A DNA stretch of 64,000 bases, taken from the NCBI RefSeq assembly GCF_001194135.2, contig NC_069002.1:36458074-36522073 (forward strand). The letters run 5' to 3'. The notes under the pieces were generated by a model. The model saw nothing but the letters and a program-made list of their open reading frames with translations. It was not told the origin of the DNA and searched no databases. Positions within the stretch are counted from its first letter, which is position 1. Every line of letters begins with the position of its first letter. Positions 4,537 to 63,958 of this stretch are shown piece after piece. Position numbers and translations under genes: made by a program. The DNA comes from Octopus bimaculoides (taxonomy: Eukaryota).

Positions 4537-4967
4537 TTGTTATTATATGTGTGTGTGTATGTGCATCTGTGTTTGTCCCCCCACCCCAGCATCGCTTGAC
4601 AACCGATGCTGGTGTGTTTACGTCCCCGTAATCTAGCGGTTCAGCAAAAGAGAGAACCGATAGAATAAGTACTAGGCTTACAAAGAATAAGTCCTGGAGG
4701 TCGATTTGCTCAACTAAAGGCGGTGCTACAGCATGGCCGCAGTCAAATGACTGAAATAAGTAAAAGAGTATAAGCTGTAATAATCGTTTCCAACGCAAGT
4801 ACAGAGATTTAATTCTTTATTAGGCAGAAAGGCCCGAATGCAAGTACAAACCCTAACCCTAACCATAAACTATTGTTTTTTTTATTTTCACTATTCTTTT
4901 ACAGGGACAAAATGAGGGGTGCTTAACCTAGTGGCTTATAGCAGACCCCCCAAAATAATGCTTGACA

Positions 4968-5308: not shown

Positions 5309-6059
5309 NNNNNNNNNNNNNNNNNNNNNNNNNNNNNNNNNNNNNNNNNNNNNNNNNNNNNNNNNNNNNNNNNNNNNNNNNNNNNNNNNNNNNNNNNNNN
5401 NNNNNNNNNNNNNNNNNNNNNNNNNNNNNNNNNNNNNNNNNNNNNNNNNNNNNNNNNNNNNNNNNNNNNNNNNNNNNNNNNNNNNNNNNNNNNNNNNNNN
5501 NNNNNNNNNNNNNNNNNNNNNNNNNNNNNNNNNNNNNNNNNNNNNNNNNNNNNNTATATATATATATATATATATTAGGGATAAAATCCAAAATTACAGG
5601 TAAAAACTCAATTAAAATCAATTTATTAAAACTTAAAATTTATATATATATATATTCCAGCTTTAAATAATAGGAATTTGTTGGTTCATTATTATTTATA
5701 CGAAAATAATAGTTGTGAATAACCAATCATACTGAATTTTGTTTTTCTTTTCATTTCCCAAATATATTTTCTTCGAAGAAGTCAACACTAAAAAGAAAGT
5801 CGTTTTCATTTGATTCTCTTATCAAATAATTTTCAGCAATCCAGAATTACATACGAATAATGTTCCATTGCAGTTGGACACGTCGATGTCGAAGATGTCA
5901 TTGTAATTAAGTAATTATTTGGTGTCTTTACTGCTTTGCTGGAAAAAGTAGGTTGTGTGGAATTAGAATTTGGTTTTGTGTGAGATGGTGGTGGCCGTGT
6001 TGACAGAATTCCTCCTACATGTAGCAGTCGACTTGATTTAAGAGTGACACGCATTGATT

Positions 6060-6939: not shown

Positions 6940-7640
6940 TTAAGCACACTGGACGAAGTGCTTATCGTTATTTCGCCCGTCGCTATGTTCTGAGTTCAAA
7001 TTCTGCCGAAGTCGACTTTGCCTTTCATCCATCCGGGGATCGATAGAATAAGTACCATTTGAACATTGGAATCGATGTAATCGATTTATCCCCTTCCCCC
7101 CAAATTTGCTGCCCTTGTGGCAAAATTTGAAACCATTATTATTATTATTATTAAGGCGGCGAGCTGGCAGAAGCGTTAGCGCGCAGGACGAAATGCTTAA
7201 CAGTATTTCGCCCGTCGCTGCGGTCTGAGTTCAAATTCTGCCAAGGTCGACTTTGCTTTTCATCCTTTCGGGGTCGATGAATTAAGTACCAGTGGAACAC
7301 TGAGATCGATGTAATCGACTATTCCCCTTCCCCCAAATTCCAGGCCTTGTGCCTATTGTAGAAAGGATTATTATTGTTGTTGTTGTTGTTGTTATTCTGT
7401 GCACCTCCTCTTTTTTTTTCTGTAATTTGTCCCTACAATGTCCCCCTCTCCTGTCACTCTTGTGGTAGGATTGGCAGAATTAGAGCGTTGAGAAAATGCT
7501 TTGCTATATTTGTTCCACTTCTTTACGATCTGGTTTCAAATCCTGTCGATGTCAACTTCTTCATTTTTTTCAGGGTCGATAAAATAAAGTACTAGTCAAC
7601 TACTTGGGATCGATGGTATCAAATAAACTCCTCCCCTCAG
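6940..7640 (+). mobile_element. Three adjacent copies of SINE family B (ggcggcgagctggcagaa...gagttcaaattc...)
   Basis: About 200-bp unit ending in (ATT)n; other copies at 28117-28556 (two), 33270-33475, 34080-34235, 54960-55165 (-) and 61035-61250. Confidence 0.85.
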
Positions 7641-21962: not shown

Positions 21963-22556
21963 NNNNNNNNNNNNNNNNNNNNNNNNNNNNNNNNNNNNNN
22001 NNNNNNNNNNNNNNNNNNNNNNNNNNNNNNNNNNNNNNNNNNNNNNNNNNNNNNNNNNNNNNNNNNNNNNNNNNNNNNNNNNNNNNNNNNNNNNNNNNNN
22101 NNNNNNNNNNNNNNNNNNNNNNNNNNNNNNNNNNNNNNNNNNNNNNNNNNNNNNNNNNNNNNNNNNNNNNNNNNNNNNNNNNNNNNNNNNNNNNNNNNNN
22201 NNNNNNNNNNNNNNNNNNNNNNNNNNNNNNNNNNNNNNNNNNNNNNNNNNNNNNNNNNNNNNNNNNNNNNNNNNNNNNNNNNNNNNNNNNNNNNNNNNNN
22301 NNNNNNNNNNNNNNNNNNNNNNNNNNNNNNNNNNNNNNNNNNNNNNNNNNNNNNNNNNNNNNNNNNNNNNNNNNNNNNNNNNNNNNNNNNNNNNNNNNNN
22401 NNNNNNNNNNNNNNNNNNNNNNNNNNNNNNNNNNNNNNNNNNNNNNNNNNNNNNNNNNNNNNNNNNNNNNNNNNNNNNNNNNNNNNNNNNNNNNNNNNNN
22501 NNNNNNNNNNNNNNNNNNNNNNNNNNNNNNNNNNNNNNNNNNNNNNNNNNNNNNNN
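21963..22556. other. Assembly gap (others: 5309-5554, 37524-37533, 51891-52325, 56693-56701)
   Basis: N runs. Confidence 1.
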
Positions 22557-28116: not shown

Positions 28117-28604
28117 GGCAGTGGTGAGCTGGCAGAATCATTTGCATGATGGGCAAAATGCTTGGTGGCATTTTGTCTGTCTTTACATTTTGAGTTCAAA
28201 TTCTGCCAAGGTTGATTTCGCCTTTCATCCTTTTGGGGTGGATAAATATGTACCAGTTGAAAACTGAGGTTGATTTAATTGACTGAGCTCCTCCCCCAAA
28301 ATTACTGACTTTGTACCAAAATTATTATTCGAGCTGGCCTAAGGTGGTGCGCTGGCAGAATCGTTAGCACGGCAGGTGAAATGCTTAACTGTATTTTGGC
28401 CGTCACTACGTTCTGGGTTCAAATTCCGCCCAGGTCGACTTTGCCTTTCACCCTTTCAGAGTCGATAAATTAAGTACCAGTTGAGTACTGGGGTCGATGT
28501 AATCAACTATCCCCTCCCCCAAAATTTCTGGCCTTGTGCCTATAGTAGAAAGGATTATTATTATTATTATTATTATCATCATTGTTATTTAAATTAATTT
28601 TCAG

Positions 28605-33158: not shown

Positions 33159-33828
33159 TAATAATGATGATAATGATAGTGTGAGGGTGCATGGCTGTGG
33201 TTTGGGTGTTCGACTCATGAGTATAAGATTGTGGTTTCGATTCTTGGACTGAGCAATGTGTTGTGTTCTTGGAGGTGGCCAGCTGACAGAATCATGAGGA
33301 ACAAAAGGTTTAGTGGCATTTTGTCCATCTTCGCATTCTGAGTTCAAATTCTTCTGAGGTCGACTTTGCTTTCATCCCTTTGGGGTCGATGAAAAAAGTA
33401 CCAGTTGAACCCTGGAATCGATTTAATTGATTTGCCCCTCCCCCTAAATAGCTGGCCTTGTGCCAAAATTTGAAAGTAACGAAAGAATAATGAGAATGAT
33501 AATGAAGGATGTTAATGAGGTGAATAATGATGATGGTAATGACTGCTAATAATAATGGTAATAACTGGTAATAATTATGATAATGATAATGGTAATATTG
33601 GTAATGACTGCAACAACAATGGTAACAGTGGTGGTAGGGACAGTGGCAGTGGTGGTGATGACAGCGGCAGTGGTGGTGATGACAGCGTTAATAAAGGTGG
33701 TAACGATCCTGGTAATAAGGATGTTAATGAAGATGACAGTGATGATGATGATGATGATGATAATGACCATTGGTAATAATAATTATCAATTGTAAAGACA
33801 ATGTTCTTATTTTCTCTCCACCGTTCAG

Positions 33829-36960: not shown

Positions 36961-37667
36961 GTTAATTACATTTTTTGAACATTTTTTTAGTCAGTTTTAA
37001 TGTTAAATTTGATTATTTATTTTAAAATTTGTTTGTTTAATTAAAATCTGATTATTTAATCAAAATCTGATTATTTAATCAAAATTTGATTATTTAATTT
37101 TAAAAATTTGATTTAAAAAAAATAAAATCTGATATTTACTGAAATTTATTTGTATAAATATGCAATATAATAATTTCACTTGGAATTTCTGCAATCCATC
37201 CATTTTCTCATTTGTTCATAACTATTTTGTGGCCAGCAGCAGCAGTTTTGAACCTTTGGAATATATTAATTTTCTTGTTATGTATGAACTGAAGTGTTTA
37301 CTCTGCATTATCTCTGCAGCTTTTCTCTTAAGGTTTGAGCATTGAAGTGTCTGAACTCTAAAACCTCAAACATTAATTTCTTGTCCTCTGCAAATCTTGT
37401 TTTTTCTATCAACTTTTCAGTGACTTATATGACTGCTTTCACTATCTTTACCCTTCTTTTTATCCCCCTTTCCTCCACCACCATCCTGCGCAATCTTTCT
37501 CCCTTTTCTCCCCCCCCCCCCCCNNNNNNNNNNTTTTCCTTCTTTCTTTCTTTCTGTGTCTAGTTGGCCTTGAATATTTAAGGACCTGGGGCAAGTGATG
37601 GTTCAGGGTTGGAGTAATATTCGATCTGTGGCTGATAATTTGGAATTAATTGTCTGTTATTTTGCAG

Positions 37668-38739: not shown

Positions 38740-38953
38740 TATCTTTTATCTTTTTATTTTTAACTTGTTTTAGTCATTAGACTATGGCCATGCTGGGGCA
38801 GCGCCTTGAAGAATTTTAGTTGACTGAATTGACCCCAGGACTTATTTTTTAAAAAGTACTAGTACTTATACTATCAGTCTCTTTTGCTGAACCACTAAGT
38901 TAAAGGGACGTAAACACACCAACCCTGGTTATCATGTGGTGGTCAGGGAACAG

Positions 38954-40088: not shown

Positions 40089-40401
40089 GTATCCTTTATA
40101 ACAATCAGCTTCTTTGTTTCCTTATTATTTTCTCTTTTCTTCCTTTGTTTTACTTTTTTTTTCGTAATTCATTTTATATTAATGAAATTGTCTTTAAGCT
40201 ATACTTTTTTACTTGTTTCAGTCATTTGACTGTGGGTCATGCTGGAGCACCGCCTTTAGTCGAGCAAATCGACCCCAGGACTTATTCTTTGTAAGCCTAG
40301 TACTTATTCTATCGGTCTCTTTTGCTGAACCGCTAAGTTACGGGGACACAAACACATCAGCATCGGTTGTCAAGCGATGTTGGGGGAACAAACACAGACA
40401 T

Positions 40402-51539: not shown

Positions 51540-53969
51540 TTACTGCAGGACATTATAGGGAAAATCTTTTCCAAGAGGGTGGCGAGAGGACTTCGGAAAA
51601 TTTACAAGATATGAGCTTTTCCTTCGCAACTTTTTAGGATGTATGTATGCCGTTTGAAAGGTATTTCTATAAAATTTCATTGAAAAAGAACCCATTTTCC
51701 TAAAAGGAAAAGCTCGGATTTTGTGAATTTTACGAAGTCCTCTCCCTACCTCCTTGGAAAAGATTTCCCCCACAAATGTCATTATAATCGTAATGGTGGA
51801 GTTCGATGAAAGCTTGTTCTTCAATAGCAAGAACAATGTAGGACGAATGTGTCGCAAAACTTGGTTTGTCGGATGTTATGACACCACACCNNNNNNNNNN
51901 NNNNNNNNNNNNNNNNNNNNNNNNNNNNNNNNNNNNNNNNNNNNNNNNNNNNNNNNNNNNNNNNNNNNNNNNNNNNNNNNNNNNNNNNNNNNNNNNNNNN
52001 NNNNNNNNNNNNNNNNNNNNNNNNNNNNNNNNNNNNNNNNNNNNNNNNNNNNNNNNNNNNNNNNNNNNNNNNNNNNNNNNNNNNNNNNNNNNNNNNNNNN
52101 NNNNNNNNNNNNNNNNNNNNNNNNNNNNNNNNNNNNNNNNNNNNNNNNNNNNNNNNNNNNNNNNNNNNNNNNNNNNNNNNNNNNNNNNNNNNNNNNNNNN
52201 NNNNNNNNNNNNNNNNNNNNNNNNNNNNNNNNNNNNNNNNNNNNNNNNNNNNNNNNNNNNNNNNNNNNNNNNNNNNNNNNNNNNNNNNNNNNNNNNNNNN
52301 NNNNNNNNNNNNNNNNNNNNNNNNNTGTTACCTGCTTAAAATTTTGGCGCGAAAAATTACTAAAGGAAAATGGAAACACTTGATGCCATTTCAAAACTGT
52401 TTTGCAGCTTAAGGATTATATACCCTGGGATCTATATATCCAGTAATTTTAGCAGGTAGATAAAAGATATTGTTTTAATACACTTTCACTTGTTTCAAAC
52501 AAACACTAACATGGTTTCCTTTTTGTCCAGACATCGTTACCACTAATTTTTATAACCTCAGCATTCGTTTATTGTTCTTTTCAAACTTTGATTTTTCAAT
52601 CTAATGTAATTCCACACTCTAGAAAACGTATTTCTGCAAAATGTCATCTTAAAATATGGACCTCTTTCTAGCATATAGGATGTCCACTTAGTGGTCATCC
52701 CTTCTTATACACACACACACATATAGATAGATAGATAGAGAGAGAGAGAGAGAAGAAGAGAAAGTAATAACAAGTGAATGAGAATAACTACGGAAGGGTT
52801 AAAAAGAAAGAGTAAAAATAATTGAAGATAAAATGAAACAAAAATGAAGCCAAAACATTTCTATAAAAATTCATTGAAAAAAACTCCCATTTTCCTAAAA
52901 GTTACGAAGGAAAAGCTCAGAACTTGTGAATTTTCCGAAGTTCTCTTCCCACCCTCTTGGAAAAGATTTTCCACACAAATTACTTTATAATCTTAATGTA
53001 TGCCGTTTGAAAAGTATTTCTATAAAATTTCATTGAAAAAAACTCCATTTTCCTAAAAGTTACGAAGGAAAAGCTCGGATCTTTGGAATTTTCCGAAGTC
53101 CCCCCTTCCCGTTGCTTTGCGCACATTTATTTTTATATTCGTTTCCTAGACATTGTTTTACACCCATTCCAATATATTTTTTGGAGTTTCATTTCCGGGT
53201 CAAGATATAAACATTAACCATAATTTCTTCTAATGCAGATGTTTTAAGCATTGTAAATTCAGATTCTTTGAAAAATAAATATGAAATAGAATGTGTGGAG
53301 GGGGTAGATCTTTTGGCCCACTTTATGTAATTTTCGAGGTTTTACTTTCTTTTGAAAAAATTTTTTTTACATCTATGTTTCAAGAATCTGAAATTGTGAT
53401 TTTTTTCAAATTACATGTAACATAAATTTAAAAAGTATTCGAAAAGTAAAAACTTTTAAAAACATTACAGGAAAATGGAGAGAGACCCAACGAAACTCAT
53501 TTTTCTCCTTTTCTTGTTTTTGCCTGTTTGTTTTCTATGATTCTTCAAACATACATCTACGAAGAAAATAATTTTTGGTGCACAAATTTCCGATTCTATT
53601 CAAATGCGAATGCATGCATGTGATGGGGGTACCATGGTTTTTATGGTGGTGGGCATGGCTGTGTGGTTAGAATAATCTACTCACGTCCACCCCATTGCAC
53701 AGCTCTTGGCTAAGAGTCTTCTACTTATAGTCTCAGACCGATCAACGCTTTGTCAGTGAATTCGGTAAACGGAAACAAGAGTGGAAGTCCCTAAGTCTGT
53801 CTGTATGTATGCCGTTTGAAAGGTATTTCTATAAAATTTCATTGTAAAAGAACCCATTTTCCTAAAAGTTACGAAGGAAAAGCTCGGATTTTGTGAATTT
53901 TACGAAGTCCTCTCCCCAACCCCTTGGAAAAGATTTTCCTTACAAAAGTCTTTATAATCGTAATGGTGG
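51540..53969. repeat. Local ~165-bp dispersed repeat, 5 copies in the AP5S1 intron
   Basis: Core tcctaaaagttacgaaggaaaagctcggattttgtgaattttacgaagtcc; + copies at about 51640-51800, 52857-52995, 52996-53110 and 53802-53969; - copy at 51545-51639. Confidence 0.9.
51796..52430 (+). mobile_element. Merlin / IS1595(ISXO2)-like DDE transposase remnant spanning a gap
   Basis: VEFDESLFFNSKNNVGRMCRKTWFVGCYDTT before the gap; YLLK/FWREK...FKTVLQLKDYIP after it. Confidence 0.7.
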
Positions 53970-55475
53970 TTCTGTTCGTGTACGTCCTTGTAACATAGCA
54001 TTTAGGCAAAAGAGACCGACAGATTAAGGACCAGACGACGTGTAAATGCAGAGTCGATTTAATCGACTAGAGACTCCGACGTGTGCTATAGCATGGCCGT
54101 AGGTCAACTACTGAAACAAGTAAAAAGTTAAAAAGTAAAATAGTAACCCCACCACCACCACCACCACTATCTGCACTGTGACATGTTAAACTGGGTCTAT
54201 ACTGTAAAAACAGGCACACTGTATTTATCGAGTCACAAGATACACAACGATGTTACACCCATCTTTATAGTCACATGATAAACACAACTTATAACCAGTA
54301 AACATATCGACCATATATCCTCTGCGTTGACAAAACTATTACAGACATGACCAGTCTGTTTTTTAGTATAGATAAGATTTCATTAATTTAATTTGGCTGC
54401 TATTTCTGGAAGTCGTTCATCCAGCGACTCGCTATGCTAAATTTAAATTCTTCTATAGGGACAAATTATTCATAGAAAGATTTGTTTTGTCTGCTTAATG
54501 TCACAAGGTAAGGGAGAGAAAATGAGAGAAGAAAGGTAAGCAATAGGCAGACGACAGAAAGCAGACGATAGAAAGGAAACGAACGACAGAATGAAGAAAG
54601 TAAGAGGCAAACATAAGAATGAAATAATGTAAATGATAGAAGGAAGAGAGAAAAGTAGGAGAAAGAATGAAAAGTAACATTCGATGGAAGAAAGAATGGA
54701 ATGTAGAAAAAAGACAGGTGGGAGATAAACGAAAGGAAGAAAGCAGACGACAGGAGAAAGAATGAAATGTAGAAAAAGACAGAGAAAAATAAAATGAAAG
54801 GGAAATTTTGTTTGACTTCAGGTCAATCCTGGGAGACTAAACTGATGATGAAAGACATTCAAACCATGACTATTGCCAGTCTCTCCAGCAGACACCAATA
54901 TACCGTTTCCAATCGGTGTTCACCGTATATACCAGTATATTCAATCAATATTTTCTTTTTTCTCTAGGCACAAGGCCCGAAATTTTGGGGGAAGGGGGGC
55001 TAATCGATTAGATCGACCCAATACGCAAATGGTACTTAATTTATTAACCCCGAAAAGATGAAAGGCAAAGTCGACTTCGGCGGAATTTGAACTCAGAACG
55101 TCAAGACAGACGAAATACCGTTAAGCATTTCGCCCGGCGTGCTAACGTTTCTGCCAACTCGCCGATTCAATCAATGTGTACAAACTCTCTTGTCAATCTA
55201 CATGACAGTCAATGTTTATATTCGAGTTAACAGGTCACTTTACATGTTACAACATGCTAAAACATCGTGGATGCACTTCACCCCAGACAGATAGGAGAAT
55301 CTCCATGTGATTACACGGCCTACAAGAAATGGCAACCAAATTTTCATCAAATCAATACACCACATCGTATTAAAAAAAAAAAAGACAGTTGATTTGATAA
55401 TGCAGTTCAGTAGTGCAGAGGTTGACTAGTTCTTAAGTAAGAGGAGGTCGTCATGGCAAGAATGCTCCCCCCCCC

Positions 55476-55675: not shown

Positions 55676-55983
55676 TCACCAATTCTAGACCCACACATAA
55701 CTTTATATGCGCCCTTTCGACTTTTCGACGGAAAGAACCAACGAAGGACCCTACTAGAAAGAGCGGCGGAATCTGTCCCTACCAAATCTCATCGTCTTAA
55801 AAAAAGGGGCGGAGTCAATGGATTATATAGCAGTCCGAGAGGGATAATGCACGATGATAATAAAAGAAAAAGACCTGGATGGTCATGGCTGGAACGTCAT
55901 CATACATCTGTGTAGCTAAACAACAATAACAAGAATGAGGGTATTGGAAGTGGGGAAGAAAAATGAAGCGAACCTGCACCCAC

Positions 55984-56412
55984 CTGGAGATAGCGAACTA
56001 TGTGTTTGAGAATAACTTCGGCGATGAGTCGGTTCTCGGTTTTATCGCAGACCAAACTGAAAGCCAGGGTGCCAGCTCCGTACCAAACGATGACCTTCTC
56101 GTCGGCATAGGGAGCGTGTTCGGATAACCTGAGGACACCACACTCCAGTTCGGGTAGCCCCAAGCCATTGTCGATGTTGGTGGCTCTGGCTAGATCTTCG
56201 TCCAATGATCGTCCCGATACGGTTCTTCGGAACTGGTATTCGCCATGAACCACATCTGCGACATACTGCCACTGGGCCTGCCGGACGCAATGCCATCGGC
56301 TTCCCGATTCCTTGATCTCATACGAAGTTAAAGGATCCTGGCGGAATGTCGACGAATGCAGCACAAGACTCGAACCTGGAAGAAGTGTGTGGATGATGAA
56401 GGCGTGAACCAT
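55984..56412 (-). CDS. AP5S1: AP-5 complex subunit sigma-1, exon 1 (143 aa)
   Basis: MVHAFIIHTL...VWYGAGTLAFSLVCDKTENRLIAEVILKHIVRYLQ|gtgggt; resembles human MVHAFLIHTL...VWLGVLSLGFALVLDAHENLLLAE. Confidence 0.93.
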
Positions 56413-56565: not shown

Positions 56566-57077
56566 TGCTAGAAATAATAGCTATAGTCCGAGTGATCTGA
56601 TACTTCAATGCTTTTAAGGATGAAACAGCGGTGTAAGTATGGAATCGATGCGAGCTAATGAAGAATCTATCACTTGTTTGTGGTTGCTTAAANNNNNNNN
56701 NNGAGTGATCTGATACTTCAATGCTTTTAAGGATGAAACAGCGGTGTAAGTATGGAATCGATGCGAGCTAATGAAGAATCTATCACTTGTTTGTGGTTGC
56801 TTAAATTGCTAGAAATAATAGCTATAGTCGAGTGATCTGATATTTCAATGCTTTTAAGGATGACACAGCGGTGTAAGTATGGAATCGATGCGAGCTGATG
56901 AAGAATCTATCACTTGTTTGTGGTTGCTTAAATTGCTAGAAATAATAGCTATAGTCCGAGCGATCTGATGCTTCAATGCTTTTAAGGATGACACACAGCG
57001 GTGTAAGTATGGAATCGATGCGAGCTAATGAAGAATCTATCACTTGTTTATGGTTGCTTAAACTGCTAGAAATAGCA
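56566..57077. repeat. ~128-bp tandem repeat (4 or more copies, internal 9-N gap)
   Basis: Unit starts tgctagaaataatagc at 56566, 56807, 56934 and 57064; near-identical copies. Confidence 0.95.
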
Positions 57078-59860: not shown

Positions 59861-60890
59861 TCAATCTTCTTCTTTGCCGTTTCTATCAAATGCAAAGTTG
59901 GTAAAACCAAACTTAGTCGGAACTTGGTAGCTGTTAGATAAGTAACTGTCATTTCCTACATATTCTCCTCCTCCCCCTCCTTGTTCATACCCTTCTGCAT
60001 CTTTTCTCCCTCCAAGAAATGACCCAGACCAATCACCAAAAGGTCCATTATGATCAACATTGGCTCCATCTTGAAGAATATGTGATCTAGGCTGATCGAT
60101 ATATGAACTAGGCTGATCGATATATGAACCAGGCTGATCGATATATGAACTAGGCTGATCAATATACGATTCAGGGTGACTGGTATTTGATCCAGGCTTA
60201 CCAATATATGATCTAGGTTGATCAAAATATGATCTCATTGGATCAATCTCTGATCTGTTCTGATCAATAATGAATTTTGACTGATCAGAATTTGATCCTG
60301 GTTTATGAAAATATGATTTTGTCATATCAATATCTGATCTGTTCTGATCAATATAGGATTCAGACTGATCAATATTTGATCCAGCTTGATCACTATATGA
60401 TTCAGCTTGTTCAAAATATGATCTGGCTGGATCAATTTCTGGTCTAGTTTGATCAACGTGTGATTTGTGCTGATCTATATTTGATTCAAACTGATGATCC
60501 ACATGGGATTTCGGTCTGTTGCTGCTGCCACCACTATAGCCGACAGGTTTTCTCTTTGTTAACATTGCTCTGCTTCGCTTTCTCAAACGGTCAGTTGGCC
60601 TTCTGGTACCACTGTTTGCAGTCCGACCAAAGTTACTTTCAGATGAAGATGAGGCAACAGCATTGACTGCCATTTCAGTGATGCTTCCATTACTTTCGGA
60701 ACGATTATTTCTCTGTTGTAAAGAATGGTGAAGTGAGGAATCAAACTGTCCATCTTCGGTAGGGATCTCATCACTTGAATTGACCGTCCATTGTAAGATT
60801 TCATTTTCAACATGTCGGATTTCTCTGTTCAGTTGAAACTTCTTCAGCTTGGCCAACTTGATCTCATCTAAATGCGTCTCATACTTGAGT
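59861..60890 (-). CDS. Terminal exon of an unrecognised gene (342 aa; coiled-coil-like start, heptad-repeat tail)
   Basis: ctcttttttcag|A-LKYETHLDEIKLAKLKKFQLNREIRHVENEILQW...GFTNFAFDRNGKEED*; 1030 nt open in AT-rich DNA; phase matches the upstream exon. Confidence 0.85.
60047..60487 (-). repeat. Coding 21-bp tandem repeat (21 heptads, consensus xSxIDQx)
   Basis: Plus-strand unit like ctaggctgatcgatatatgaa; no indels across 147 codons. Confidence 0.9.
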
Positions 60891-61489
60891 CTGAAAAAAG
60901 AGAGAAAGCAGAATTCTTTTTGTATCTATGAAAAATTGGCAATATATATATATATAAATAAATAACGAACCAAGACTCCTGTCTTAGGGTATCAATATCT
61001 TCCCCTCTCTCTCTCTCTCTCTCTCTTTTCTAAGGCAGTGAGTTGGTAGAATCATTAGCAGACAAGGCTAAATGCTTAGCATCAGTTTATCCATTCTTAC
61101 ATGCTGAGTTTAGATTCCACTGGGGTTGACTTTGCCTTTCATCCCTTTCAAGGATTGATAAGATAAGTACCAGTTGAGTGCTGGGGGTTGATGTAATCAA
61201 CTCAGCTCCTCTCCACATAACTGCTGACCTTGTGCCAAAATTTGAAACCAATATTTTCCTCCTTACCACTAGAGTGAGATACCCTGCAAAAATACATCGC
61301 TTGACAACTGATGCTGGTGCATCTATGTCCCCATAGCTTAGCGGTTCGGCAAAAGAGACCGATAGAATAAGTACTAGGCTTACAAAGAATAAGTCCTGGG
61401 GTCGATTTAATTCGACTAAAGGTGGTGCTCCAGCATGGCCACAGTCAAATGACTAAAACAAGTAAAAGAGTAAAAGAGTTATAATATAC

Positions 61490-61772
61490 CGTTGTGCTTC
61501 TCTGTCAGCATGGAGCATTGAAGTATATTTACTGCTGAAGCCTCTTCCATGGTTGACCTTCTTGTTCAGAACACTGGGCAATGATGGTGGTTTCTTAGAA
61601 ATGATGCTGGATCCCATTTTTGTGTTAGCTGTTGGTGGATTCAGTGTTTTGGCTCTGGCAGTTGGTGATCTGGCTGTGGGTGAAACTAATGTTGAAGCTG
61701 AGGTTGGTGATAGGACAAGAGGTGCAGGGGATTTACCTTTAGGTGCCCACCTCTGCTTTCGTTTGGTATCAC
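61490..61772 (-). CDS. Penultimate exon of an unrecognised gene (S/T/P/K-rich)
   Basis: atttcaacag|GT-DTKRKQRWAPKGKSPAPLVLSPTS...MLHADREAQ-CG|gtatat; the phase-2 end joins the next exon in frame. Confidence 0.75.
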
Positions 61773-61881
61773 CTGTTGAAATAGAAATACTGAACATGAG
61801 AAAAAGATCTCATATTTGTTTTAGAATATATATATAGACTTGTAAGTGTTTAGTCTGGCTGTCTGTCAGTATTTTAATGTG

Positions 61882-61949
<68 letters not shown>

Positions 61950-62269
61950 ATATATTTATGTATATATATATGTATGTATATACATGTATATGTATATCTA
62001 TACATGCGTGTCTTTGTGTTAGTGTTTGTCCCCCTTCCCCACCACTGCTTTACAACTCGTGTTGGTGTGTTTACATCCCCTTAACTTAGTGGTTCCACAA
62101 AAAGAGATTGATAAAATAAGTATCAGGTTTTTAAAAAAATGTACTGGGGGTTGATTCATTCGACTAAAATTTCTTCAAGGCAGTGCCCCAGTATGGCTGC
62201 AGTCTAATGACTGAAACAAGTAAAAGGTAAAAGATGAAAAAAATATACCTGCAAATATCAGCAATCAAT

Positions 62270-63100
62270 TTTACACCTACTGATTGATATTAATACCTCT
62301 TCCATAACAGTTGCACGAGTCAATCCAGTCCATAAAAATTAAGAAAAGGTGATCCTTACCAAATTCCAACACCCACGTTGAAAGGTTTAAACTTAAACCA
62401 TTTACCTGAATACAAACACCTGGGCGTTCATATAGTGACTTCACAGCAAATAGAAATTGTCCATTAATTGCAAATTCTTGCAAAAAACCTCCACATTTAT
62501 ATCTCATGGCACAAGGTTGTTTGTATTTTTGGGGTCTACAGAGCATGTGTACATCTAACAATATTCCCACAATTTCTCAAAGACCTGCCACAGAGTGAAT
62601 ATCTAATCGGTTGCACTGCATCCCAGAGAGAGCCACACTGTGCCTCAGTCAGCTTGGATCAATGTTTTCCCTACATCTCTTTCTCAGACATTTAGTGTAG
62701 ACTTTACTGGGGACGCTCAACAATGGGATTTCTCTGTAATTAGAGCATTCCCTTCTCACCCTTTTTAAAAAATTGGTATTATCACCTTGGATAGCCATTG
62801 CTTTGGTGTCTTTCCAGAAGTCCACATCACCTGACATACATCATTCAGCCAGAGAATATCTTCCTTTATTTAAGACTTTTAACATCTCTAACAGAATTCA
62901 TCCTCTCCAATAGCCTTGTCCCATTTGTGCACCTTAATTACCTCTGTGAGGTTAGTTTTCACCCCTAGATGCATCTGATGTCCACCAGAAGATTTTTTTT
63001 ATTGTGACTGGATTTAGGAGAATAGCAAGGTATTCTATCCACCTTCCAAAAATACTCTCTCTTCCTCCTGCTGTCACATCCTGGCTGTGGTGTTGGGTCA
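62270..63100 (-). mobile_element. RTE-clade RT fragment in an intron of the unrecognised gene
   Basis: RWIEYLAILLNPV, ECSNYREIPLLSVPSKVY, AVKSLYE..VCIQVNG, LFLIFMDWI. Confidence 0.85.
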
Positions 63101-63958
63101 AAAGGTGGGATACTTAAGGGGCTGCCTTTGTTTGCTTGCAACTAACTAGGTACCTAAACCAGTTAATGAAAGCATAGCACATATTACCAAGCTATACTCA
63201 TTCAGTATATATAAACGGTAGTTTCTTTCAGTGTCCACCAACCAAATCTACTCACAAGGCTTTGTGCCAGCTCAGGGGTATAGCAGAAGACACTTGGCCA
63301 AGGTGTCATGCTTTAGGATTGAACTCAGAACCATGCAGTTGGGAAGCAAACTTCTTACGATATAGCCAGGTCTGCTATGATATGTACACATACATACATA
63401 CATACATACATGTCTATGTATATACACATGCACACACATATATATGTGTGTGTGTGTGTGTGTGAAACTATTTATACTGTGAAACTTAATTTAATTTTAA
63501 TTTTTGATAAATTGAATTTAATTGAGTTTTTATCTGTAAATTTGGATTTTTATCCCTAATATCATTATATATATATATATATATAATCTCTGTTCAGATA
63601 TGTATGTATTTGTTTGTGAGTGTGTGTGTGTGTGTGGGAAGAATACAGGAATGTCATCAAACATCCGGTTACTGGAGATATTTTCAAAATAAGGAGTGTT
63701 AGTATCACAAAGAGCAGTCACAGGCACTTTTATTTTATAATAGTACAATATATGTGTGTGTGTGTGTGTCTATAATGAGTGTGTGGTAAGAAACTAGGCA
63801 CAGGAGTGGCTGTGTGGTAAGAAGGTTGCTTCCCAACTATGTGGTTCTGGGTTCAGTCCCACTGCATGGCACCTTGGGCAAGTGTCCTCTACTATAGTCT
63901 CAGGCTGACCAAAGCCTTGCAAGTGGATTTGGTAGACAGAACCTGAAAGAAGCCCGTC

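Follow-up and report, generated by a model that had tools for sequence, protein, structure and literature searches.

What protein carries an array of 21 consecutive seven-residue units, and what might such an array do there? The question arises in a 64,000-nucleotide stretch of the Octopus bimaculoides genome (contig NC_069002.1, positions 36,458,074 to 36,522,073 of the forward strand; hereafter the window, with position 1 as its first letter), in which an open exon on the minus strand repeats the heptad xSxIDQx without a break. We find that the exon is the last coding exon of a gene for a TMC1/2/3-type channel, and its sequence matches place the array in the long cytosolic C-terminal tail of that channel, ~350 residues past the tenth transmembrane helix (TM10). 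We give an even chance to the reading that the array is a disordered spacer with a net charge of -13 and much Ser, Tyr and Asp, possibly phosphorylated at Ser-x-x-Asp. A first-pass annotation of this DNA had called the array the best candidate for new biology in the window. That was an overstatement, as the array belongs to the C-terminal tail of a TMC channel that is already present in public gene models; it is a lineage-restricted low-complexity repeat in an annotated gene, and neither a new fold nor a new system.

The heptad array and its higher-order units

The array, the degenerate copy next to it and the blocks within it lie as follows, with heptads numbered from 0 to 20 in the direction of translation.

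60047..60487, minus strand: the array itself, 147 codons long, with 21 xSxIDQx heptads in register, from translation, the period-7 test, and the 21-bp unit with its higher-order periods
60488..60511, minus strand: degenerate 22nd heptad, KSHVDHQ with an additional F, directly upstream of the array with the register off by one
60341..60445, minus strand: super-unit 1, heptads 2-6 (RPEIDPA RSYFEQA ESYSDQA GSNIDQS ESYIDQN), with a lag-9 identity of 77% to super-unit 3
60257..60340, minus strand: super-unit 2, heptads 7-10, without the third heptad of the five-unit pattern, from the unit matrix and the 84-bp period
60152..60256, minus strand: super-unit 3, heptads 11-15, from the unit matrix
60089..60172, minus strand: four SYIDQP heptads, 15-18, from the unit matrix and ortholog comparison

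Translation of the minus strand from 60487 down to 60047 passed through 21 heptads with no indel and returned the same list that the first-pass annotation had given. Column identity was 0.40 at period 7 and ~0.07 for the other periods, a z of 46 relative to shuffles, and the per-position consensus was [R/G/E/K]-S(18/21)-Y(10)-I(13)-D(16)-Q(14)-P(8), with I, V or F at position 4 in 18 of the 21 units. At the DNA level, Tandem Repeats Finder reported a 21-bp period over 60077-60485, together with higher-order periods of 63 and 84 bp. The recurrence of a super-unit of four to five heptads, also proposed in the first-pass annotation, was recovered from a 21x21 matrix of unit DNA identity, in which three super-units (5+4+5 heptads; units 2-6, 7-10 and 11-15) correspond to one another. 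The best of these matches were units 3 and 12 (19/21 bases), 5 and 9 (18/21) and 6 and 10 (17/21), with further matches between units 8 and 12 (17/21), 2 and 11 (16/21) and 6 and 15 (17/21); DNA identity between array units at lag 9 was 77%. The DNA of units 16 and 18 is identical, and unit 17 differs by one base. The degenerate 22nd copy is also found in O. sinensis. As the 18-bp core of the unit has no other occurrence within the window and is confined to the array, the repeat is not a dispersed satellite. A reading of the array on the plus strand or in another frame was rejected, since the open reading frames (ORFs) there are at most 89 aa and none is conserved.

Among its 147 residues the array has 25 Ser, 18 Asp, 14 Ile, 14 Gln, 11 Pro, 10 Tyr and 6 Gly; Asp and Glu together number 25 and Lys and Arg 12, for a net charge of -13. 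Sites of the form S-x-x-[D/E] occur 16 times, against 4.7 ± 1.8 in shuffled sequences.

The host gene encodes a TMC1/2/3-type channel

The two exons of this gene that fall within the window are:

59861..60890, minus strand: terminal coding exon of the TMC gene, with the acceptor ttttttcag before it, the stop codon TGA at 59863..59861 and a tblastn match to O. sinensis
61490..61772, minus strand: penultimate coding exon, Ser/Pro-rich, ending in ADREAQ and the first two bases of an Arg codon, with splice sites cag/GT...CG/gtat

The terminal exon is an open frame of 342 codons in DNA of 37% GC, and its first base completes the split Arg codon that joins the last two exons. When 1.8 billion representative proteins were searched exhaustively with a profile of the exon, two full-length relatives were recovered, namely the O. 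vulgaris protein CAI9738747.1 (E 3e-171) and a partial Argonauta hians protein (E 4e-25). The former shares a 90% cluster with XP_036368146.1 of O. sinensis, a protein of 1306 aa named "transmembrane channel-like protein 2-A". By tblastn on the window, residues 876-970 of XP_036368146.1 fall on 61773..61489 with 94% identity and residues 970-1306 on 60892..59864 with 86% identity, and there was no match outside the last two exons; the junction ...ADREAQ-R-LKYETH is identical in the window and in the O. sinensis protein. Since only residues 876-1306 can be placed, the window holds the last two coding exons, and the gene continues past its right end. The same two-exon layout is present at the O. 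vulgaris and Argonauta loci, with the array within one uninterrupted exon in both.

The identity of the channel comes from the upstream part of its relatives. XP_036368146.1 carries the Pfam TMC domain PF07810 (E 2.6e-32; the window ends before these exons) and matches C. elegans TMC-1 (7usw, E 4e-143) and TMC-2 (8tkp, E 4e-133), as well as the TMC1 peptide of 6wud (6wud_B, E 4.7e-12), which is the CIB-binding region. PF07810 was also found on a second gene model, P0005 (E 5.6e-10), and an Argonauta gene model, P0006, extends from TM10 into the tail. The nearest named relatives of the host protein are arthropod 'TMC 3' and 'TMC 2-A'. Judged by these matches, the host gene is the octopus ortholog of the TMC1/2/3-type channels, to which C. 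elegans TMC-1/2 and vertebrate TMC1/2 belong, and its subfamily is closest to TMC1/2/3 and not TMC4-8, an assignment drawn from sequence matches.

Gene models for the host gene already exist in RefSeq and ENA. An exact search for the ORF of the window gave no match on record, and a word-indexed protein search recovered one Logan cluster alone. Within the library that could be searched, there was no paper with the array's motif strings or on the tail of this gene. One published O. vulgaris transcript is named 'tmc-1-like' (c31137_g8_i2, PV164552; PMC12919962, supplement file 3), with best BLAST matches to TMC7. We rejected it as transcript evidence for the window gene because it is TMC7-like, a different paralog according to that paper's own BLAST table.

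The array sits between conserved elements of the tail

Around the array, the tail has the following elements in the window.

60779..60889, minus strand: conserved amphipathic helix (LKYETHLDEIKLAKLKKFQLNREIRHVENEILQW...; ADREAQRLKYETHLDEIKLAKLKKFQLNREIRHVENEILQW), continuing from the end of the penultimate exon
60545..60604, minus strand: basic patch RRPTDRLRKRSRAMLTKRKP, upstream of the array and identical in O. sinensis
59999..60046, minus strand: post-array segment GPFGDWSGSFLGGRKD, from comparison with Argonauta (RSYTDWS GPLLEWR)
59879..59926, minus strand: conserved aromatic C-terminal motif QVPTKFGFTNFAFDRN, 62% identical to Argonauta

Read from the penultimate exon onwards, the order is a Ser/Pro-rich segment, the helix, an acidic Ser-rich linker, the basic patch, the array, GPFGDWSGSFLGGRKD, a Gly-rich stretch and the aromatic motif. 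The whole tail is ~10% diverged from that of O. sinensis. The upstream helix is 100% identical in O. sinensis and 63% identical in Argonauta, with a ratio of non-synonymous to synonymous substitution rates (dN/dS) of 0.10-0.18; AlphaFold 2 (AF2), run with an alignment of six rows, models it as a helix over residues 2-37 with a predicted local distance difference test score (pLDDT) of 78-95. Behind the array comes the conserved aromatic C-terminal end, GDWSG...KFGFTNFAFDRN. The DWSG core of GPFGDWSGSFLGGRKD, a segment derived from heptads, is invariant, as is K.GF.N.AF.RN within the aromatic motif QVPTKFGFTNFAFDRN.

The Argonauta hians TMC tail (P0006 residues ~210-345, L005 9346-10191) holds ~7 copies of a 15-residue unit, PSLKPPKGKFSENLA. 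This second array bears no relation to the heptads; it precedes the conserved Ser/Pro-rich segment, and the Octopus orthologs do not have it. The TMC tail seems prone to repeat expansion.

The array is old, known only from octopods and weakly constrained

For comparison within Octopus we used O. vulgaris, O. sinensis and genomic contigs of another Octopus species (the Logan species; dS ~0.24 to the window). No frameshift or stop interrupts the frame in any of the five sequences compared, which come from four or five octopod species. Between the window and the Logan species there is one in-frame indel in the 1 kb exon, versus ~15 gap events in ~300 bp of 3' untranslated region. Unit by unit, DNA identity between the two was 89% for orthologous and 59% for paralogous units, and the best match of each window unit was its own ortholog, with the exception of units 16 and 17, both of which best matched unit 18 of the Logan species. 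This preference indicates lineage-specific gene conversion or re-duplication, and it bears out the earlier description of the SYIDQP copies as recently homogenised. In this zone the Logan species has GSHNDQS as the orthologous unit, and O. vulgaris and O. sinensis have GSNTDQ[P/L]. It is also the zone in which copy number differs: the window and the Logan species each have 21 units, and O. vulgaris and O. sinensis have 20. Across the Octopus species, 20 of the 21 units have one-to-one orthologs. In Argonauta, 13 heptads are recognisable, with deletions and three to four register shifts (spacers of +2, +20, +13 and +11 residues).

The array thus has the features of a coding minisatellite, namely head-to-tail 21-bp units, periods of 63 and 84 bp, 21 versus 20 copies and converted units 16-17. 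It arose by tandem amplification of a 21-bp coding unit, with duplication of blocks of four to five units, before the split of Octopus and Argonauta; from then on the units have mostly evolved separately, the exceptions being local gene conversion or gain and loss in the SYIDQP zone.

Constraint on the array was estimated by pairwise Nei-Gojobori dN/dS, in which the values rest on few substitutions.

Window versus Logan species: array 0.51, preceding 134 codons 0.21
O. vulgaris versus Logan species: array 0.87, preceding 134 codons 0.27
Window versus O. vulgaris: array 0.98, preceding 134 codons 0.11
Window versus Argonauta (dS near saturation, ~0.8-2): array 0.48, linker 0.77, helix 0.18, C-terminus 0.22

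The array was 44% identical between the window and Argonauta, compared with 35-39% in the flanking disordered segments. Changes to Argonauta were unevenly spread within the heptad: Ser2 and Asp5 were changed in 11 of 33 cells, versus 54 of 83 at the other positions (Fisher p = 0.003). By these comparisons the array is old, stable in its units and weakly constrained, with Ser2 and Asp5 alone preferentially kept. The earlier proposal that selection maintains the register was not borne out, given the unit lost in O. vulgaris and O. sinensis, the three to four register breaks in Argonauta and array dN/dS values of 0.5-1.0.

The profile search, Argonauta included, revealed no relatives beyond octopods; the molluscan, annelid and arthropod TMC fragments recovered in another search are too short to extend into the tails. 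The array is, from the sequences compared, known from octopods only (Octopus and Argonauta), so that the suggestion of a cephalopod novelty is unproven.

Predicted structure and comparison with known repeats

With the six-row alignment, AF2 gave the array a pLDDT of 35-45, scores below 50 everywhere except the upstream helix, and no strands. When the array was folded alone as a single sequence, its proline-rich second half was coil with a pLDDT of ~40. The mean hydropathy of the array, 0.355, lies under the Uversky boundary of 0.445, and its charge-hydropathy values are typical of disordered sequence. In Pfam searches with the exon, the two joined exons and their relatives, no family passed its gathering threshold for the array; the sub-threshold scores were those of DUF6818, at 16 bits where 27 are required, and of KIF21A_4th, at 12.8 where 33.1 are. 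A PDB sequence search with the tail returned nothing significant.

Tails and repeats of other systems offer partial likenesses. In C. elegans TMC-1, the cytosolic C-terminus of ~400 residues is intact in the native complex, is invisible by electron cryo-microscopy owing to conformational heterogeneity, and has no assigned function (PMC9605866). This tail (residues 886-1285; PDB 7usw/7usx/7usy) belongs to the same family and takes the same place after TM10 as the octopus tail, with a length of ~400 versus ~480 residues, and the juxtamembrane sequence ...ERTE(E/G)KKK(I/V)(F/Y) is conserved between the two. Past worm residue 906, however, sequence similarity to octopus is undetectable, and no heptad array has been reported in the worm; relative to it, the octopod tail adds the conserved helix, the basic patch, the heptad array and the aromatic C-terminal motif.

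The C-terminal domain (CTD) of RNA polymerase II consists of YSPTSPS heptads at the C-terminus of RPB1, and is a disordered scaffold with degenerate distal repeats that owes its function to multisite phosphorylation. The octopus array resembles it in being a C-terminal run of tandem heptads with much Ser, Tyr and Pro, but differs in its consensus (xSYIDQP), in its acidity, in its host, a membrane channel, and in a much weaker constraint (dN/dS 0.5-1.0). Having 0 [ST]P sites, it was rejected as a CTD-type array, in line with the earlier remark that the period is that of the CTD and the sequence unrelated. An assignment to the SYGQ-rich prion-like domains of the FET type (FUS/EWS), which consist mainly of Ser, Tyr, Gly and Gln and have hardly any charged residues, was likewise discarded, on a composition of 25 D+E, 12 K+R, 6 Gly and 14 Ile in 147 residues. 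The likeness to lineage-specific coding minisatellites extends to the 21-bp head-to-tail unit, higher-order blocks, copy-number change, gene conversion and relaxed constraint; in contrast to these, the octopus array is unusually stable, with its 20 of 21 one-to-one orthologs and many units recognisable in Argonauta.

Similar heptads do occur elsewhere. The arrays of P0014 (NSELDQK), P0020 (KASIADQ) and P0016 (KSELDQT) share the period and a similar S..(I/L)DQ core with the octopus array, but the similarity is limited to the repeats, and most of these x-S-x-[IL]-D-Q-x arrays have no Pro or Gly and lie within coiled-coil proteins. A further eukaryotic protein, P0008 (assemblies GCA_022702875.1 and GCA_022702835.1), has ~20 heptads of the form RGS(Y/H)(A/I/V)DQ in a three-heptad super-unit and aligns to the octopus array over 155 residues at 38% identity, the heptads themselves being free of gaps. 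Its ORF was located at:

8001-9317 of L003, and 891-2207 of L004

We rejected P0008 as a homologous TMC tail, because the repeats alone match and no other part of its locus is hit by the TMC protein in tblastn. It may be a second home of the same repeat; the S..(I/L)DQ arrays in general, P0008 included, probably represent convergence of periodic low-complexity sequence, not homology.

What the array may do in the channel tail

In the reading to which we give an even chance, the array would act as a flexible spacer that separates the helix and basic patch from the aromatic C-terminal motif, and selection would preserve chiefly length, composition and the Ser2/Asp5 pair rather than the exact sequence or register. 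Acidophilic kinases such as CK2 recognise S-x-x-D/E as their minimal consensus, and up to 16 predicted sites of this form could be phosphorylated by such enzymes; both the enrichment of these sites and the preferential conservation of Ser2 and Asp5 are as expected of a CK2-type array. Phosphorylation would then tune the charge of the tail and its contacts with the basic patch, the membrane or tail-binding partners, and through such contacts could affect channel trafficking, anchoring or gating, while the proline-poor first half of the array may form a transient helix. Multisite phosphorylation is the most concrete candidate mechanism for the array. The first-pass annotation had already listed a multisite phospho-array among its options: the number of S-x-x-[D/E] sites, the charge-hydropathy values and the low pLDDT are compatible with a disordered or multiply phosphorylated array, whereas the phosphorylation itself is predicted from sequence. 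Several observations weigh against a disordered, phosphorylated spacer. Two of the three Octopus pairs give an array dN/dS indistinguishable from 1, and the R or K at -1 of many of its Ser residues is unfavourable for CK2. The disorder predicted by AF2 came from an alignment of only those six rows, and the single-sequence run departs from full disorder in modelling heptads -1 to ~12 as helix. In the protein collections searched there were no transcript-derived ORFs across the exon junction.

A lesser but real possibility is that the array is a nearly neutral coding minisatellite, a tolerated filler that stays in frame only because the downstream C-terminal motif must be translated, with no function specific to the heptads. 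An array dN/dS of 0.5-1.0 among Octopus species, versus 0.1-0.3 in the preceding 134 codons, is what such filler would show, as are the lost unit, the gene conversion in units 16-18, the deletions and register shifts in Argonauta, and profile searches that find no relatives outside octopods. Pulling the other way are unit-for-unit orthology up to Argonauta at near-saturated dS, where the array evolves at a dN/dS of ~0.48, below that of the adjoining linker, the preference for keeping Ser2 and Asp5, and conservation that is as good as or better than that of the disordered flanks. We regard it as unlikely that the proline-poor heptads 0-8 form a helix or coiled coil, which could pair the two tails of a TMC dimer and extend the upstream helix. 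These heptads do carry I, V or F at position 4, their seventh residue is small, there are 41 residues without proline at 60302-60424, and the nearest non-homologous profile matches (P0014, P0016 and P0020) are proline-free x-S-x-[IL]-D-Q-x arrays that also match coiled-coil Pfam families. Folded as a single sequence, the fragment gave AF2 helices at residues 8-74 and 81-109 with a pLDDT of 66-79, but single-sequence AF2 over-predicts helices for periodic sequences, and the alignment-based model has none in the array. Prolines in units 2, 8 and 11-18, glycines in units 5, 9, 14, 17 and 20, the single strongly hydrophobic position (4) per heptad, where a coiled coil has two (a and d), and the broken register in Argonauta are further points against it. 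The statement that the array is no coiled coil can therefore be kept in part: it is not a classical one over its whole length, and the Pro-rich units 12-18 in particular do not have the properties of one, while the first half is helical in one of the two predictions.

The remaining explanations seem to us more doubtful still. A role at the level of RNA is distinctly improbable. The palindromes formed by Asp-Gln codons (UGAUCA, AUCGAU) would pair neighbouring units and provide double-stranded RNA that could attract ADAR editing or alter translation or localisation of the transcript, and it is because they occur in nearly every unit that the array RNA folds better than its shuffles (-113.9 kcal/mol versus -88.0 ± 5.2 for dinucleotide shuffles; z = -4.9). 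They are, however, an automatic by-product of tandem D-Q codons, and the minimum-energy structure has a negligible ensemble frequency, with part of it retained in the centroid. The dS of the array is also low, at 0.07, 0.16 and 0.21 in the three Octopus pairs, compared with 0.23, 0.25 and 0.28 in the preceding 134 codons (p = 0.014 for the window versus O. vulgaris), but the contrast comes from few sites and non-independent pairs, and could reflect RNA structure, gene conversion or chance. The beta-solenoid or amyloid-like fold put forward in the first-pass annotation has very little to recommend it now. Such a fold would suit the strict period, the lone hydrophobic position in each unit and the Pro or Gly found where units meet, yet neither AF2 run contains a strand (one of them from a shallow alignment), no PDB or Pfam match was found, the array is highly charged and polar with a hydropathy in the disordered range, and the register shifts and unit loss seen in relatives would break a solenoid.

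Other features of the window

The last intron of the TMC gene separates the two exons.

60891..61489, minus strand: last intron, 599 bp, containing two dispersed repeat families

These two families, which look SINE-like (resembling short interspersed elements), make up almost the whole intron, and each has several further copies in the window at 70-91% identity (40202-40380, 4590-4784, 38749-38921, 62047-62234, 28124-28559, 6990-7140, 33304-33475 and 54967-55160). The intron is ~1150 bp long in O. vulgaris versus 599 bp in the window. In the second-to-last intron, at ~62300-63300 on the minus strand, there are stop-riddled ORFs that by eye resemble a decayed reverse transcriptase of the non-long-terminal-repeat type; with their stops masked, these fragments (~62.3-63.3 kb) gave no Pfam match at E <= 0.01. 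An open frame at 55900-56412 on the minus strand encodes the N-terminal 144 residues of the AP-5 complex sigma-1 subunit (Pfam PF15001, E 1.5e-29), and this exon follows next downstream of the TMC gene, in the same orientation. Runs of N at 5309-5554, 21963-22556, 37524-37533, 51891-52325 and 56693-56702 mark assembly gaps. The window as a whole is 36.6% GC with many (TA)n, (CA)n and (ATAT)n microsatellites, as is typical of a draft octopus scaffold.

Implications for octopod TMC channels

In hair cells, the pore of the mechanotransduction channel consists of TMC1/2-type proteins, members of a family that lies behind hearing and touch transduction. The long C-terminal tails of the invertebrate proteins escape structural view and have no function assigned to them. 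A more ambitious and unlikely proposal is that the octopod TMC gained a regulated tail module, made of the helix, the basic patch, a Ser-x-x-Asp array of ~150 residues and an aromatic C-terminal anchor motif, in which the array would be a phosphorylation-tunable entropic tether or a multivalent docking strip that couples the channel to the cytoskeleton or trafficking machinery in mechanosensory cells, such as statocyst hair cells and the receptors of suckers and arms, and in which self-pairing mRNA might add diversity through ADAR recoding. If true, this would amount to an octopod-specific tuning of a conserved force-gated channel. The array is in any case a tidy example of a coding minisatellite in which unit-by-unit orthology has been kept across octopods, and the modular octopod tail gives testable handles on the roles that a TMC tail may have in anchoring, trafficking and phospho-regulation.

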